Assembly (NCBI GenBank): GCA_965603825.1 | Contig: CBFDEM010000035.1 | Location: 558,001-622,000 of the forward strand | DNA: 64,000 nucleotides | Direction: 5' to 3' | Origin: Blepharisma stoltei ATCC 30299 | Taxonomy: Eukaryota > Protista > Ciliophora | In this document: in pieces, positions 10,188 through 14,143 of the stretch | How the letters are laid out: every line of letters begins with the position of its first letter | Numbering within the stretch: the stretch's first letter is position 1 | Notes under the pieces: generated by a model | Told to the model about the DNA's origin: nothing | The model's input: only the letters and a program-made list of their open reading frames with translations | Databases searched by the model: none | Made by a program: the position numbers and the translations under genes

Positions 10188-11609
10188 TTATTTACCTCTT
10201 GGCCTTTTTTGAGGTAAATTTCTGGCAGGAGTCAGATCGATTTCGTAATCTTTTAACCATATATTAGCCTTTCGTTCCCTTTTTGGGTATTTTTTGTCAG
10301 GCATTGGATTGGTATACTTTGGAGAAGTCTTGTGAGTAATTGTGCTTGAAGTTTTTGCAGGCTTAGGGGCATCTTTTCTTGCTTTAGAAGGCTGTAAATC
10401 AGGGTTATTAGTGGCTTTAGGAGGTTTTCTTGGAACCTTTGTAGATGGACTAATAGGAGATTTTTTCGCTTGAGGAGTTTTTGCTGGGGATTCAGCTATA
10501 GGTATATTGTTTTCTAACAATTGATTAGTGTTATTGCTATTTCTTGCCGCTCTGCTTGCTTTTCTAGTTATCTTAGGTGCAGGGGAAGCTGGGATAGAGG
10601 CTTTCGCGTTATTTTTGGGTTTATTTTGAGGGCCAGCTAGTTTAGGTGTTATCAAAGAACTTCTCGTTGAAACTACTTTACTAGCCTTACCATCTTTAAT
10701 TTTACGTTGTCTTGTGGGTGTTTTGCTTGGTATAACTCTAACACTCTTATCTTCATCAATTCTCCTTAGTTTTGCTGGAGCACTATCTTTATAATCCTTT
10801 AGTAGGCTCTTGCTCAAGAATATATTGACACCTTTGTTTACTCTTTCACCTGAAGAGTATTGATTAATAATATTTTTGAGTTCCCATCTTCCTCTCTCAA
10901 TCTCTTCTATTTTAAATAAATCAGAAAAATCTTTTTTGGTATTGGCAGAATCAAATTTTGTTGGAGCACGCATGAAGACCTTAGCAAAAAATATCAAATA
11001 CACCCCACAATCAAATAGATTTTCTTGCTGCGGCACTCTTACTGCTATCAATGGTACTTCCTTTTCTGGAATTTCACAGTAATCTTCATTATTAAGAGTT
11101 GCCCATGCATTTGCTATAAAATACCTCACATTCTCTCCAAGATCTTCTTCTATAATATTCAACGAATCAAACAGCAAAATCTGGGGCCTCTTTTGCTTTC
11201 CTTTTCTATTTTTTAAGAAAATGCATTTTGGATAGCAAACTACAAGTAACACCCAATGATTATTAATGGCTAAAGGGATAACCCAATAATCCTTATCAAA
11301 AATTTCTTTTTCATTAACCCACTTAGCGATCTTTTCATACCCATCATTTTCCAGCGTTTTGTAAAAAAAGCTATTGAAGACGTGAATACTTTTTCTTTCA
11401 CTTTCATTGAGAAAGTACAATAGAAAGAAGTCAACTACGTTATCATTTAAATACTGTTTAGGATTAAGTCTAGAGTAGTCTGATTCTTTTATTGGAATGC
11501 AAGATTTTATTTTGTATGTCATGATTACAGGGTCATTGCTGTAGTTGCAGATATTTTCTTTTTCAGAGTCGTCACTGCTTGAGTCTATTTCAAAGACTTC
11601 TATATCCAT
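10188..11609 (-). CDS. Ulp1/SENP-family SUMO protease (C48) with basic low-complexity tail
   Basis: YLNDNVVDFF, HWVL (His), FDSL (Asp), PQQENLFDCG (Gln/Cys). First ATG is at 11609; the track start is TTG. Confidence 0.9.
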   Translation of the reverse strand: MDIEVFEIDSSSDDSEKENICNYSNDPVIMTYKIKSCIPIKESDYSRLNPKQYLNDNVVDFFLLYFLNESERKSIHVFNSFFYKTLENDGYEKIAKWVNEKEIFDKDYWVIPLAINNHWVLLVVCYPKCIFLKNRKGKQKRPQILLFDSLNIIEEDLGENVRYFIANAWATLNNEDYCEIPEKEVPLIAVRVPQQENLFDCGVYLIFFAKVFMRAPTKFDSANTKKDFSDLFKIEEIERGRWELKNIINQYSSGERVNKGVNIFLSKSLLKDYKDSAPAKLRRIDEDKSVRVIPSKTPTRQRKIKDGKASKVVSTRSSLITPKLAGPQNKPKNNAKASIPASPAPKITRKASRAARNSNNTNQLLENNIPIAESPAKTPQAKKSPISPSTKVPRKPPKATNNPDLQPSKARKDAPKPAKTSSTITHKTSPKYTNPMPDKKYPKRERKANIWLKDYEIDLTPARNLPQKRPRGK

Positions 11610-12193
11610 GTTTAATAATTTTATTGAAGTGTTATTTTGTGAGTGTAAAGCCAATGCATTTATGGATTAAGAAATTAAATTTAAGGTAGTTTAGGCTTAT
11701 TGCTTATTTATTAAAGTTTGTAAGTAAAACATTTGATTTTTGTTTTATTCAACAGAGAAGTGGCAATTTTTTATAAAATTAGATTGTCTTGTATTATTTG
11801 TGTAATATTACCTTGGATAATCGATTTTTTTGATTATAGTCCATTGACTATTTTAAGACAACTGCATTTTATATCATTCTTGCTAAGCAAGTTCCAAAAC
11901 CCAATAAACATTTCAAATTCGTAATTAAACTGCACTAAAAATTTCACGCGCGCACTTAGCAGGACTATTATCTGCAGCCTATATATAGGATAAAAATTAT
12001 TTTCAGCCTGCTTTAAAAATTGCCTCAAAAATTAAAAATTTGCTTTTGAGCAATTAAGCATAATGAAAAATTATGACCTCAACAATGAAAAACCCTGCTG
12101 CAAAATTTATCAAAAATTAATAAAAGTAAAGCCATATCAGCTCGATTATTATTTGTTCATCTGAGTCCATATTAGCTTATTATAATTTTAATG

Positions 12194-12254
12194 GTGATGA
12201 TCACTACGCTGGAATTACCAACTGCATCCAGATGAAAACTAGATCGCTAACTGA
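12194..12254 (+). ncRNA. snR77: Box C/D snoRNA 1, snR77/SNORD65-like (18S Um578 yeast / Um627 human site)
   Basis: C GTGATGA 12194; guide GCTGGAATTACC 12208-12219 complementary to 18S GGUAAUUCCAGC; D' CTGC 12222; C' CAGATGA; D CTGA 12251. D'+5 falls on the U of GCGGUAAUUCC. Confidence 0.85.
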
Positions 12255-12271
12255 TTTTTATAGAGCTCTAA

Positions 12272-12326
12272 ATGATGACAACTGTTCAGTTCTGCTTCAG
12301 AATCTTGACGACATTTACTGTCCTGA
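12272..12326 (+). ncRNA. U38: Box C/D snoRNA 2, U38/snR61-like (LSU Am1133 yeast site)
   Basis: C ATGATGA 12272; guide CAGTTCTGCTT 12287-12297 complementary to LSU AAGCAGAACUG; D' CAGA 12298; C' TTGACGA; D CTGA 12323. Same guide register as U38. Confidence 0.85.
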
Positions 12327-12345
12327 ACAATTTTATTCATTTACC

Positions 12346-12395
12346 TTGATGACTTCTCTAGAATTACTGTCCTTGACGACATTCCTCGTTACTGA
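12346..12395 (+). ncRNA. snR57: Box C/D snoRNA 3, double guide (18S GUAAUUCUAGAG region; snR57-type Gm1572 site)
   Basis: C TTGATGA 12346; guide CTCTAGAATTA; D' CTGT; C' TTGACGA; guide ATTCCTCGTT complementary to 18S AACGAGGAAU; D CTGA 12392. D+5 is the G of AACG. Confidence 0.85.
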
Positions 12396-12412
12396 CTTCA
12401 TATAACTTTATA

Positions 12413-12475
12413 CTGATGACAAAACTTGCCCTCTTCTGATTCATTGATGAATCTTTTTATCACCAAGATCTCTGA
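12413..12475 (+). ncRNA. U24: Box C/D snoRNA 4, double guide (18S GAGGGCAAGU; U24-type LSU Cm1437 site)
   Basis: C CTGATGA 12413; guide ACTTGCCCTC; D' CTGA 12436; C' TTGATGA 12444; guide CACCAAGATCT complementary to LSU AGAUCUUGGUG; D CTGA 12472. Confidence 0.88.
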
Positions 12476-12572
12476 CTTTATAAATTTCTTAATTTTCTAT
12501 TAAATATTGAGAACTGCTCAAGCTGTGTGAGCATTGAGTAAAACAAATTAAATTAAATTATCAAATATTCGA

Positions 12573-14111
12573 CTAGTAGCTGATGTGAGGCATTTCCCAT
12601 TTTTCTTGACTTTTAATGCATTCCTGTATCATTTTTCTGTAGTCTGCTTCAGAAAGCATATAATCCCCCCTCGGTTTCTCAGGCAATTTTACCATTTTGA
12701 CCTTCTTATTCTTAAGGAAAGCAGTGGCTTCTCTTTTGTATTTTATTTTTTCTTCCTGCTCCATAAGTTCTCTGCATTTTATTTTCCATTCTTTTAGTTT
12801 TTCAATATATTCTTTTGCTCTTTGCCTTAAAAGATTTTTAATACATTGTTCTTTAACGTTGTCAGGGATTGTAGATTTCCCGAAAATCGCTTTTGAATCT
12901 ATTGGTTTTTTTAGCTCATTATTCTGTAAAGCATGCCTTTTTACTTGTAACTCTCTGAATATTTTATATTCAGCTTTATTTCACATGACTATTTTAAAAG
13001 TCATTGAAGTTTTTTTCTCAAATAATAAGTGCTTTATTGTTCTTTGGAGAAATGTGATTTTTGTTTTTCACTGGGCGAGAAGCCGGAAAAGCATATCTTT
13101 TGTAGCAGCACGTTCAATTATATCGATAATTCTGCTTTTATACACAATTTTCTGTGATTTGTGCCATTCTCTTACAGGTTTCACAAGCTTTTCTAGACAT
13201 CTTTTTGCATTTCTAATTTTTAATAGTTTGTGTAGCCGTTTAAACTTTCCAATGCTCCAGCAAAGCACATAAAGCCTCTTCAAAACCCCTTCTGACCTTA
13301 TATGCAAATCAGTTCTCTCTACCATTCTATGATACCCAATAGACTGTCAGCTGCACACAATCCAAAAAATAACCCACCCTTTAGCAATTTTATCAATTTC
13401 TTCCCTTCTCACTTTATATTCAAATTTCCTTTGTTTCGCGTCTAATTTTAGCTGTGTATCTATCCTCTTTTGAAAAATCAAAAGCTCTTTTTTCTTCTTC
13501 GCTTCCAAGATTTTTGTGTTTTCAATCTGAGACTTCAGCTTGATAAGCTTTTCTTTATTATCAGGCAGGTATTTTTCCATTTCTTTGTTTTCTAATAAAA
13601 TAGCTTGAATTCGTCTTCTCTGTTCTATTTCGTCAATTTCAAGTGGAGGTGAAGCTAGCTCATTTCTTTTGAATCTAGAAGTGGTGCTAAACTGAAACGA
13701 CTGCCCTCCTAAAGTGCTTAATGAAACATTATAGCAGCCTGGGCCGAGTTTTGTACTTGTGCTGCCTGGAGTCATGGAAAATCTTCTTGTTTCAAAAAGA
13801 TCAGAATACTCGTTAAGCAATTTTTCTATCATTGCTCTGTTCTATATAAAAGTTACAGGCTTTTTGGTATCTTTAGGCAAAAGTTGTTCAGATTTTACTC
13901 GGGGATGGGAAAATCGATTTGTTTGTGTAAATGCGGCTTGGAGGTCGGTATATGAGTCGCTTGGAGTTATATCAATTGAAAATTTTTTTCTCTGGGTAAT
14001 ACTTGATTTTAAAATTGGTAGGTCTGCAGTTTTTCTTGATGAAAGAGTAGAAGAAGAGGCTGGTGGAGAGTTAATTAAGACTGAAGGCAATGAAGCTTTC
14101 CTTGAGTGCAT
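12573..14111 (-). CDS. Basic ~507-aa protein with a PGxY (SHIPPO-like) motif; one 15-nt intron
   Basis: Four track ORFs join in one frame via intron 13842-13856 and TGA=Trp at 13347, 13068 and 12981. Ends at TAG 12573. Confidence 0.8.
13842..13856 (-). other. 15-nt spliceosomal intron
   Basis: GTAACTTTTATATAG; in-frame TAG if retained; A at -6. Confidence 0.85.
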
Positions 14112-14143
14112 TAAGATGATATTAATAGTATATATTATAATAA

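Follow-up and report, generated by a model that had tools for sequence, protein, structure and literature searches.

Four compact box C/D units in an intergenic gap

Four box C/D units lie head-to-tail on the + strand at positions 12194-12475 of the window, by which we mean the whole stretch of 64,000 nucleotides analyzed here, within contig 35 of the source assembly (41.46 Mb, 64 contigs). Their box motifs were located in the region 11700-13000. The cluster occupies a gap of about 1 kb between two minus-strand genes, in agreement with the intergenic placement first proposed for it, and it is outside the introns and UTRs of either neighbor. The macronuclear genome of Blepharisma stoltei ATCC 30299 comprises 64 telomere-to-telomere contigs, has introns of 15 and 16 bp and reads UGA as tryptophan; snoRNAs are unmentioned in the main text of the paper that describes it (PMC9942806). 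A literature search for Blepharisma or Stentor together with snoRNA found no study of heterotrich snoRNAs. The features of the locus are as follows.

10188-11654, - strand: left neighbor, ORF of an Ulp1-type protease (Pfam PF02902)
12166-12186, + strand: conserved upstream element, a putative promoter, with TCCATATT at 12166-12173 followed by a TATAA-like motif at 12181-12185
12194-12254, + strand: unit U1, 61 nt; C box GTGATGA at 12194, D′ box CTGC at 12222, C′ box CAGATGA at 12229, D box CTGA at 12251-12254
12255-12271, + strand: spacer 1, 17 nt, AT-rich, opening with a run of five T
12272-12326, + strand: unit U2, 55 nt; C box ATGATGA at 12272, D′ box CAGA at 12298, C′ box TTGACGA at 12305, D box CTGA at 12323-12326
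12327-12345, + strand: spacer 2, 19 nt, AT-rich
12346-12395, + strand: unit U3, 50 nt; C box TTGATGA at 12346, D′ box CTGT at 12367, C′ box TTGACGA at 12373, D box CTGA at 12392-12395
12396-12412, + strand: spacer 3, 17 nt, AT-rich
12413-12475, + strand: unit U4, 63 nt; C box CTGATGA at 12413, D′ box CTGA at 12436, C′ box TTGATGA at 12444, D box CTGA at 12472-12475
12476-12557, + strand: 3′ trailer of the transcript, with a short conserved T-rich motif and, in the fold, a small hairpin near 12512-12538
about 12647-14116, - strand (its ORFs): right neighbor, a spliced gene under RNA contig cover

The sizes of the units (61, 55, 50 and 63 nt) and spacers (17, 19 and 17 nt) given in the initial annotation, as well as its box positions, were reproduced to the base. 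All four units carry a C box of the form NTGATGA and a perfect CTGA D box, and D′ and C′ boxes are present in every unit, degenerate as is usual for these internal boxes. In U3, the guide spacers measure 12-14 nt and the D′-C′ linker 2 nt. The lack of clear terminal stems, which would close the canonical kink-turn, had been remarked on at the outset and is borne out, as the 12 nt flanking each unit on either side pair no better than shuffled flanks. Since most Tetrahymena C/D snoRNAs are alike in this respect, the missing stem would be compatible with box C/D membership in a ciliate and does not exclude it. The fold of the cluster, whose structure has a z-score of -1.96, contains no hairpins in the spacers.

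Complementarity of six guides to rRNA of the same organism

Guides were scored against the rRNA of the organism itself, that is, the SSU (L001:1501-3231), the LSU (L004:1501-4643) and the ITS/5.8S stretch between them. Position 5 of the guide (D+5) was required to pair, and each guide was compared with 300 shuffles. The best targets, with the number of shuffles reaching the same score, were:

U1-D′: SSU U544, 12 Watson-Crick pairs; 0 of 300
U2-D′: LSU A1020, 12 bp including 1 G-U; 5 of 300
U3-D′: SSU U153, 11 Watson-Crick pairs; 3 of 300
U3-D: SSU G1520, 10 Watson-Crick pairs; 12 of 300
U4-D′: SSU G517, 11 bp including 1 G-U; 14 of 300
U4-D: LSU C1315, 15 bp including 2 G-U; 0 of 300
U1-D: no target, at chance; 188 of 300
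U2-D: no convincing target, at chance; 204 of 300

Thus six of the eight guides form 10-13 Watson-Crick pairs with position 5 paired, each of them beating at least 95% of its shuffles, in agreement with the six guides for which complementarity to rRNA had been claimed before. U1-D and U2-D are orphan guides, with no target in rRNA or in the U2, U3 and U6 RNAs. Single guide matches of 10 bp are not rare, about 36 of them being obtained when all CTGA words of the window were scanned on both strands as background; the weight of the evidence therefore rests on six of eight guides matching together at one locus.

The four D+5 sites that had been named initially hold, and correspond to yeast Um578, Am1133, Gm1572 (this one by our own count) and Cm1437. 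The U1-D′ site, SSU U544, is the equivalent of yeast Um578 and human Um627 and is of the snR77/SNORD65/snoR77Y type; the U2-D′ site, LSU A1020, is the equivalent of yeast Am1133 (snR61/U38/Z1 type); and the U4-D site, LSU C1315, is the equivalent of yeast Cm1437 (U24/SNORD24 type). The U3-D site, SSU G1520, is 67 nt upstream of the first C of the CCCGTC motif, with a G at +3, where yeast has m7G1575. By our count along the yeast sequence, we take it to be the equivalent of yeast Gm1572, a site of the snR57 type; the homology of U3-D to snR57 follows from the position of G1520 relative to the decoding-centre C. G517 is presumably one position away from human Gm601, again by our own count. The U4-D guide together with its D box recurs in two metagenome contigs (L050 and L054).

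Published site tables show that yeast Um578 (snR77) corresponds to human Um627 and to Arabidopsis Um582 (snoR77Y), yeast Am1133 (snR61) to Arabidopsis Am1143 (U38), and yeast Cm1437 (U24) to Arabidopsis Cm1447, and that Um578/Um627, Am1133 and Cm1437 are conserved in yeast, human and Arabidopsis (PMC8583080; PMC5199042). The yeast landmarks Gm1572 (snR57), m7G1575 and Cm1639 fit the placement of G1520 (PMC5199042). Neither SSU U153 nor G517 has an exact counterpart in the site tables of PMC8583080 and PMC5199042.

The SSU genes themselves are found on at least 11 macronuclear contigs, near-identical and full-length (C1, C4, C12, C23, C34, C41, C51, where there are two, C52, C53, C54 and C56), with the LSU directly downstream in those checked. 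This indicates that the rDNA is dispersed, and is neither a single array nor a separate minichromosome.

Relation to Rfam families

At gathering thresholds, no Rfam family was found anywhere in the window. In a permissive scan, U2 aligned with snR61/Z1/Z11 (RF00476; 34.2 bits, E 0.003, gathering score 45) with guide and D′ box in register, U4 with SNORD24 (RF00069; 32.7 bits, E 0.002, gathering score 41), also in register, and U1 with snoR77Y (RF01178; 25.8 bits, gathering score 52) with guide and box in register. U3 searched alone had no match in Rfam. The three units agree with these families in the guide and in its register to D or D′, and select the same rRNA nucleotide. They differ from them in being 20-30 nt shorter than the models, in their second guides and in their sub-threshold scores. 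We call U1, U2 and U4 functional homologues by guide, and not curated members of those families.

A paralogous cluster retains boxes and guides more than spacers

A second cluster of four units, 81% identical overall, is present on contig C54 (G000:C54:170891-171225; L007:1501-1835). Its units measure 60, 56, 53 and 54 nt and its spacers 16, 16 and 18 nt. Identity between the two copies was distributed as follows.

Boxes: 84/88 (95%)
Five retained rRNA guides: 79/88
Spacers: 35/54 (65%)
Flanks: about 50%
35 columns directly upstream of U1: 26/35; farther upstream, 23/63

By spacer, identity was 12/17, 10/19 and 13/18 for spacers 1 to 3. The U2-D′ guide is identical at 19/19 positions; of the U1 guides, D′ is identical at 19/21 and the orphan D at 9/15. 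Conservation of boxes and guides above that of spacers is the pattern expected under selection on the boxes and the working guides. The 3′ trailer is only about 44% identical, and its hairpin at 12512-12538 is not conserved in the C54 copy.

The two copies have also diverged in their guides. U4-D′, which is intact in the window copy, is lost in the paralogue (4/16 identical), and a 2-nt insertion beside the D′ box of the C54 U3 makes A151 the predicted SSU target in place of U153. The pair thus shows guide turnover after duplication directly, with one guide lost and another shifted by 2 nt. Whole-genome duplications have been reported for Blepharisma (PMC13685798) and could be the origin of the pair.

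RNA contigs span the spacers

Four public runs of one study (X1-X4) contain the locus. Assembled contigs were used, which are weaker evidence than single reads and are uninformative on strand, on RNA ends and on mature species of 50-63 nt. The contigs covering the cluster are:

X1: 12264-12557
X2: 12274-12527
X3: 12209-12498, with the paralogue's letters at 12239-12272
X4: 12209-12491

Spacer 1 is crossed by the contig of X4, and spacers 2 and 3 by those of X1, X2, X3 and X4. All three spacers are therefore bridged by RNA contigs in the four runs, and the units are joined in one transcript, as are those of a polycistronic cluster. The runs represent RNA, because the 15-nt intron at 13842, in the right neighbor, is removed in the contigs of three runs, and because depth is zero at 11974-12107 in every run. 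The paralogue-specific letters in the X3 contig indicate that both copies of the cluster are transcribed. A number of contigs begin where the window and C54 copies differ, and these starts are branch points of the assembly graph and not RNA ends; on the 3′ side, the contigs stop at 12491, 12498, 12527 and 12557. The contigs continue through the five T that open spacer 1, which speaks against RNA polymerase III as the transcribing enzyme. The upstream intergenic DNA is otherwise silent, with a lone RNA contig of 152 nt at 11812-11963 (depth 2.2) in one run.

Arrays of the same layout recur in the genome

A search of the genome for tandem units (C box, 40-58 nt, D box, 14-22 nt, C box) gave 56 matches, compared with 2 in a reversed control, which exceeds what chance would yield. 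Among the loci fetched from this search, there were at least 11 further arrays in addition to the window cluster and its C54 paralogue, with 2-5 units of 48-62 nt each and spacers of 14-22 nt. The suggestion that such arrays are a habit of the lineage is in line with this recurrence of one geometry. In the further arrays, one or both guides of most units form 10-14 Watson-Crick pairs with rRNA. The arrays include:

C24, near 141.6 kb (L034:1380-1701): 5 units of about 53, 52, 53, 59 and 62 nt; spacers of 15, 22, 14 and 14 nt
C2: 3 units
C3: 2 units, paralogue of the C10 array
C10: 2 units, paralogue of the C3 array
C5: 2 units
C9: 2 units
C14: 2 units
C28: 2 units
C35, near 46.7 kb: 2 units
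C51: 2 units

The array on C24 is the largest found. Its first unit has an ATGACGA C box, and one of its guides forms a 12-bp pairing at position 111 of the ITS/5.8S stretch.

In metagenomes, a linked U1-U2 pattern designed to find an orthologous cluster gave no match. A compact snR61-type pattern matched 17 contigs of about 43-66% G+C, none of them ciliate-like, which are taken to be from fungi or other non-ciliate eukaryotes; the neighbors of these snR61 homologues are about 200 nt away. Separately, the metagenome contig JACLAC010012000.1 (L060), from a eukaryote, contains at about 2200-2700 a tandemly repeated snoRNA pair, composed of an snR61-type unit and a second unit, with some boxes separated by just a few bases.

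A conserved element precedes most arrays

The element at 12166-12186 has counterparts at most other arrays, where CCATATT or CCATTTAT, followed by ATAATA, is found 10-47 nt before the first C box (L008, L010, L013, L020, L022, L034, L069 and L070). The CCAT-type element occurs once per array, and in the window only before U1, with none between the units; internal promoters would not fit into spacers of 17-19 nt. It resembles TGTCCC(A/T)TAA, which is located at about -55 to -65 of the U2, U3 and U6 genes (L047, L048, L066-L068). Tetrahymena snoRNA genes carry an upstream AAACCCATAA (PMC3273799). The CCAT-type element may be the array promoter, a role that is uncertain because it lies about 28 nt before the C box, compared with 55-65 nt at the snRNA genes.

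A strict pattern, CCATATT-TATAA-TGATGA, was tried as a marker of arrays and was not specific: of its 9 matches, 3 were arrays and the rest resembled gene starts.

Proposed expression of the cluster and alternative explanations

The pairing of the guides with rRNA and the RNA contigs that cross the spacers support the initial reading of the locus as a polycistronic cluster of box C/D methylation guides. This analysis observed directly how the units are built, that six of their guides are complementary to rRNA of the same organism, that conservation in the paralogue is selective, that RNA spans the spacers and that the layout recurs across the genome. We interpret the locus as an independent intergenic transcription unit of a heterotrich ciliate macronuclear genome that encodes four miniature box C/D snoRNAs carried on a single precursor, an explanation to which, taken as a whole, we assign a probability of roughly 0.87.

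The promoter, the polymerase, the cleavage of the spacers, the sizes of the mature RNAs and the methylation itself are the parts of this explanation that we infer. Transcription from one promoter close upstream of the U1 C box would give rise to one precursor, probably made by RNA polymerase II, that contains the four units and about 80 nt beyond them. Snu13, Nop56/58 and fibrillarin would assemble on each C/D and C′/D′ pair, the single-stranded, AU-rich spacers of 17-19 nt would be cut, and exonucleases would trim the products back to the protein-protected boxes. As the spacers lack hairpins and are too short for stems of the Rnt1 type, cleavage of single-stranded linkers is the likelier route. 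The mature RNAs would then pair with pre-rRNA, and fibrillarin would methylate the ribose of the nucleotide that faces guide position 5, counted upstream from D or D′. The sites predicted in this way are U544, U153, G517 and G1520 of the SSU and A1020 and C1315 of the LSU.

The four units could instead form one RNA that stays uncut or is only partly cut, with a stable multi-snoRNP concatemer as the working form. The k-mer depth of the spacer-spanning contigs (12-26) is like that of neighboring mRNAs (7-47), the spacers have no hairpins or stems that would direct cleavage, and stable multi-unit "precursor intermediates" are known in Ostreococcus (PMC7671301). However, RNAs of 50-63 nt are lost from standard RNA-seq libraries, so that a view restricted to the precursor is to be expected, and abundance is poorly reflected in contig depth. 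The spacers also evolve faster than the units (65% compared with 95% identity), as would be expected if they were discarded. We therefore consider it distinctly unlikely that the concatemer is the working form. Alternatively, each unit could be an independent gene with its own start, and the contigs crossing the spacers could be due to read-through or to joins made in assembly, since De Bruijn contigs can merge overlapping transcripts; several clustered Tetrahymena snoRNAs do have their own upstream element (PMC3273799). Spacers of 17-19 nt are nevertheless too short to accommodate an upstream element plus a TATA-like motif, which were found once, before the array, and a 31-letter word that bridges a spacer requires reads that cross it, while such contigs were obtained in four runs. 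Independent starts thus appear very improbable.

Finally, the locus might be a functionless, decaying duplicate, or a set of box-like words that arose by chance in AT-rich DNA. The two orphan guides, the Rfam scores under the gathering thresholds and the possibility that the paralogue carries the function would be in keeping with this. Yet six guides are significant against shuffles, the two copies share 95% of box positions while differing at 35% of those in the spacers, RNA is made from both of them, and it is the window copy that has the larger number of working guides (U4-D′ being intact). We regard lack of function as the least credible of these explanations, with hardly any probability left to it.

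Returning to the single-precursor reading, its recurring layout could be extended to a more general proposal. Spacers of 14-22 nt that are unstructured and too short to hold RNase III hairpins, terminal stems or internal promoters would call for a rule of monomer release that has not been described. Heterotrichs with 15-nt introns may accordingly obtain most of their C/D guides from ultra-compact arrays that are either processed by such a rule or kept as uncut multi-snoRNP concatemers. This generalization is speculative and, in our estimation, unlikely. If true, monomers could, for example, be released by an endonuclease acting on the short naked linker that separates one assembled snoRNP from the next.

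Comparison with known systems

The present work adds to the genome a snoRNA annotation and six predicted rRNA methylation sites, four of which fall on positions methylated in yeast and three on positions methylated also in human and Arabidopsis. The recurring layout, with units of 48-63 nt, spacers of 14-22 nt and one element per array, represents one way in which a genome with tiny introns houses its guides, and offers a compact system in which to study how snoRNAs are released when RNase III hairpins and terminal stems are both lacking.

In yeast, snR57, snR55 and snR61 form a polycistronic snoRNA cluster, and guides of the snR61 and snR57 types thus share a cluster there too. The spacers of yeast clusters contain hairpins that are cut by the RNase III enzyme Rnt1, whereas those of Blepharisma are unstructured and could not accommodate hairpins of this kind. 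The fungal snR61 homologues in metagenomes are separated from their neighbors by about 200 nt. More generally, plants, Euglena, Chlamydomonas, Ostreococcus and trypanosomatids have polycistronic C/D clusters as a standard arrangement, and yeast has them as well (PMC7671301; PMC2784804; PMC3273799). The cluster described here resembles those of yeast, plants, Euglena, Chlamydomonas and Ostreococcus (PMC7671301) in having guides on the same strand, a single precursor and, as we suppose for Blepharisma, release by nucleases.

The likeness to archaeal C/D sRNAs, which consists of a length of 50-60 nt and two usable guides, is one of geometry only, and the symmetric 12-14 nt arrangement is seen in U3 alone. 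In contrast to the archaeal RNAs, the cluster is a eukaryotic nuclear tandem array directed at eukaryotic rRNA sites, in a genome with 18S/28S rRNA, snRNAs and spliced introns, and it does not belong to the archaeal class.

The closest parallel is with the TtnuCD snoRNAs of another ciliate, Tetrahymena thermophila (PMC3273799). Tetrahymena C/D snoRNAs are 55-77 nt long, most of them without a terminal stem, and their clusters are spaced at 169-421 nt (PMC3273799). The two sets have in common short RNAs with degenerate D′ and C′ boxes and mostly no terminal stem, a first C-box position without purine preference, intergenic clusters composed almost purely of C/D genes, and an upstream element of the CCCATAA type. 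They differ in that the Tetrahymena members are 169-421 nt apart and many have their own upstream element, whereas in Blepharisma the units are of 48-63 nt, the spacers of 14-22 nt, and there is one element per array. Polycistronic C/D clusters and stem-less ciliate C/D snoRNAs had thus already been published (PMC3273799), and the novelty of the locus was overrated at first. The packing alone is unusual with respect to the Tetrahymena and fungal examples, and this is a difference of degree, with slightly smaller units and spacers about tenfold shorter.
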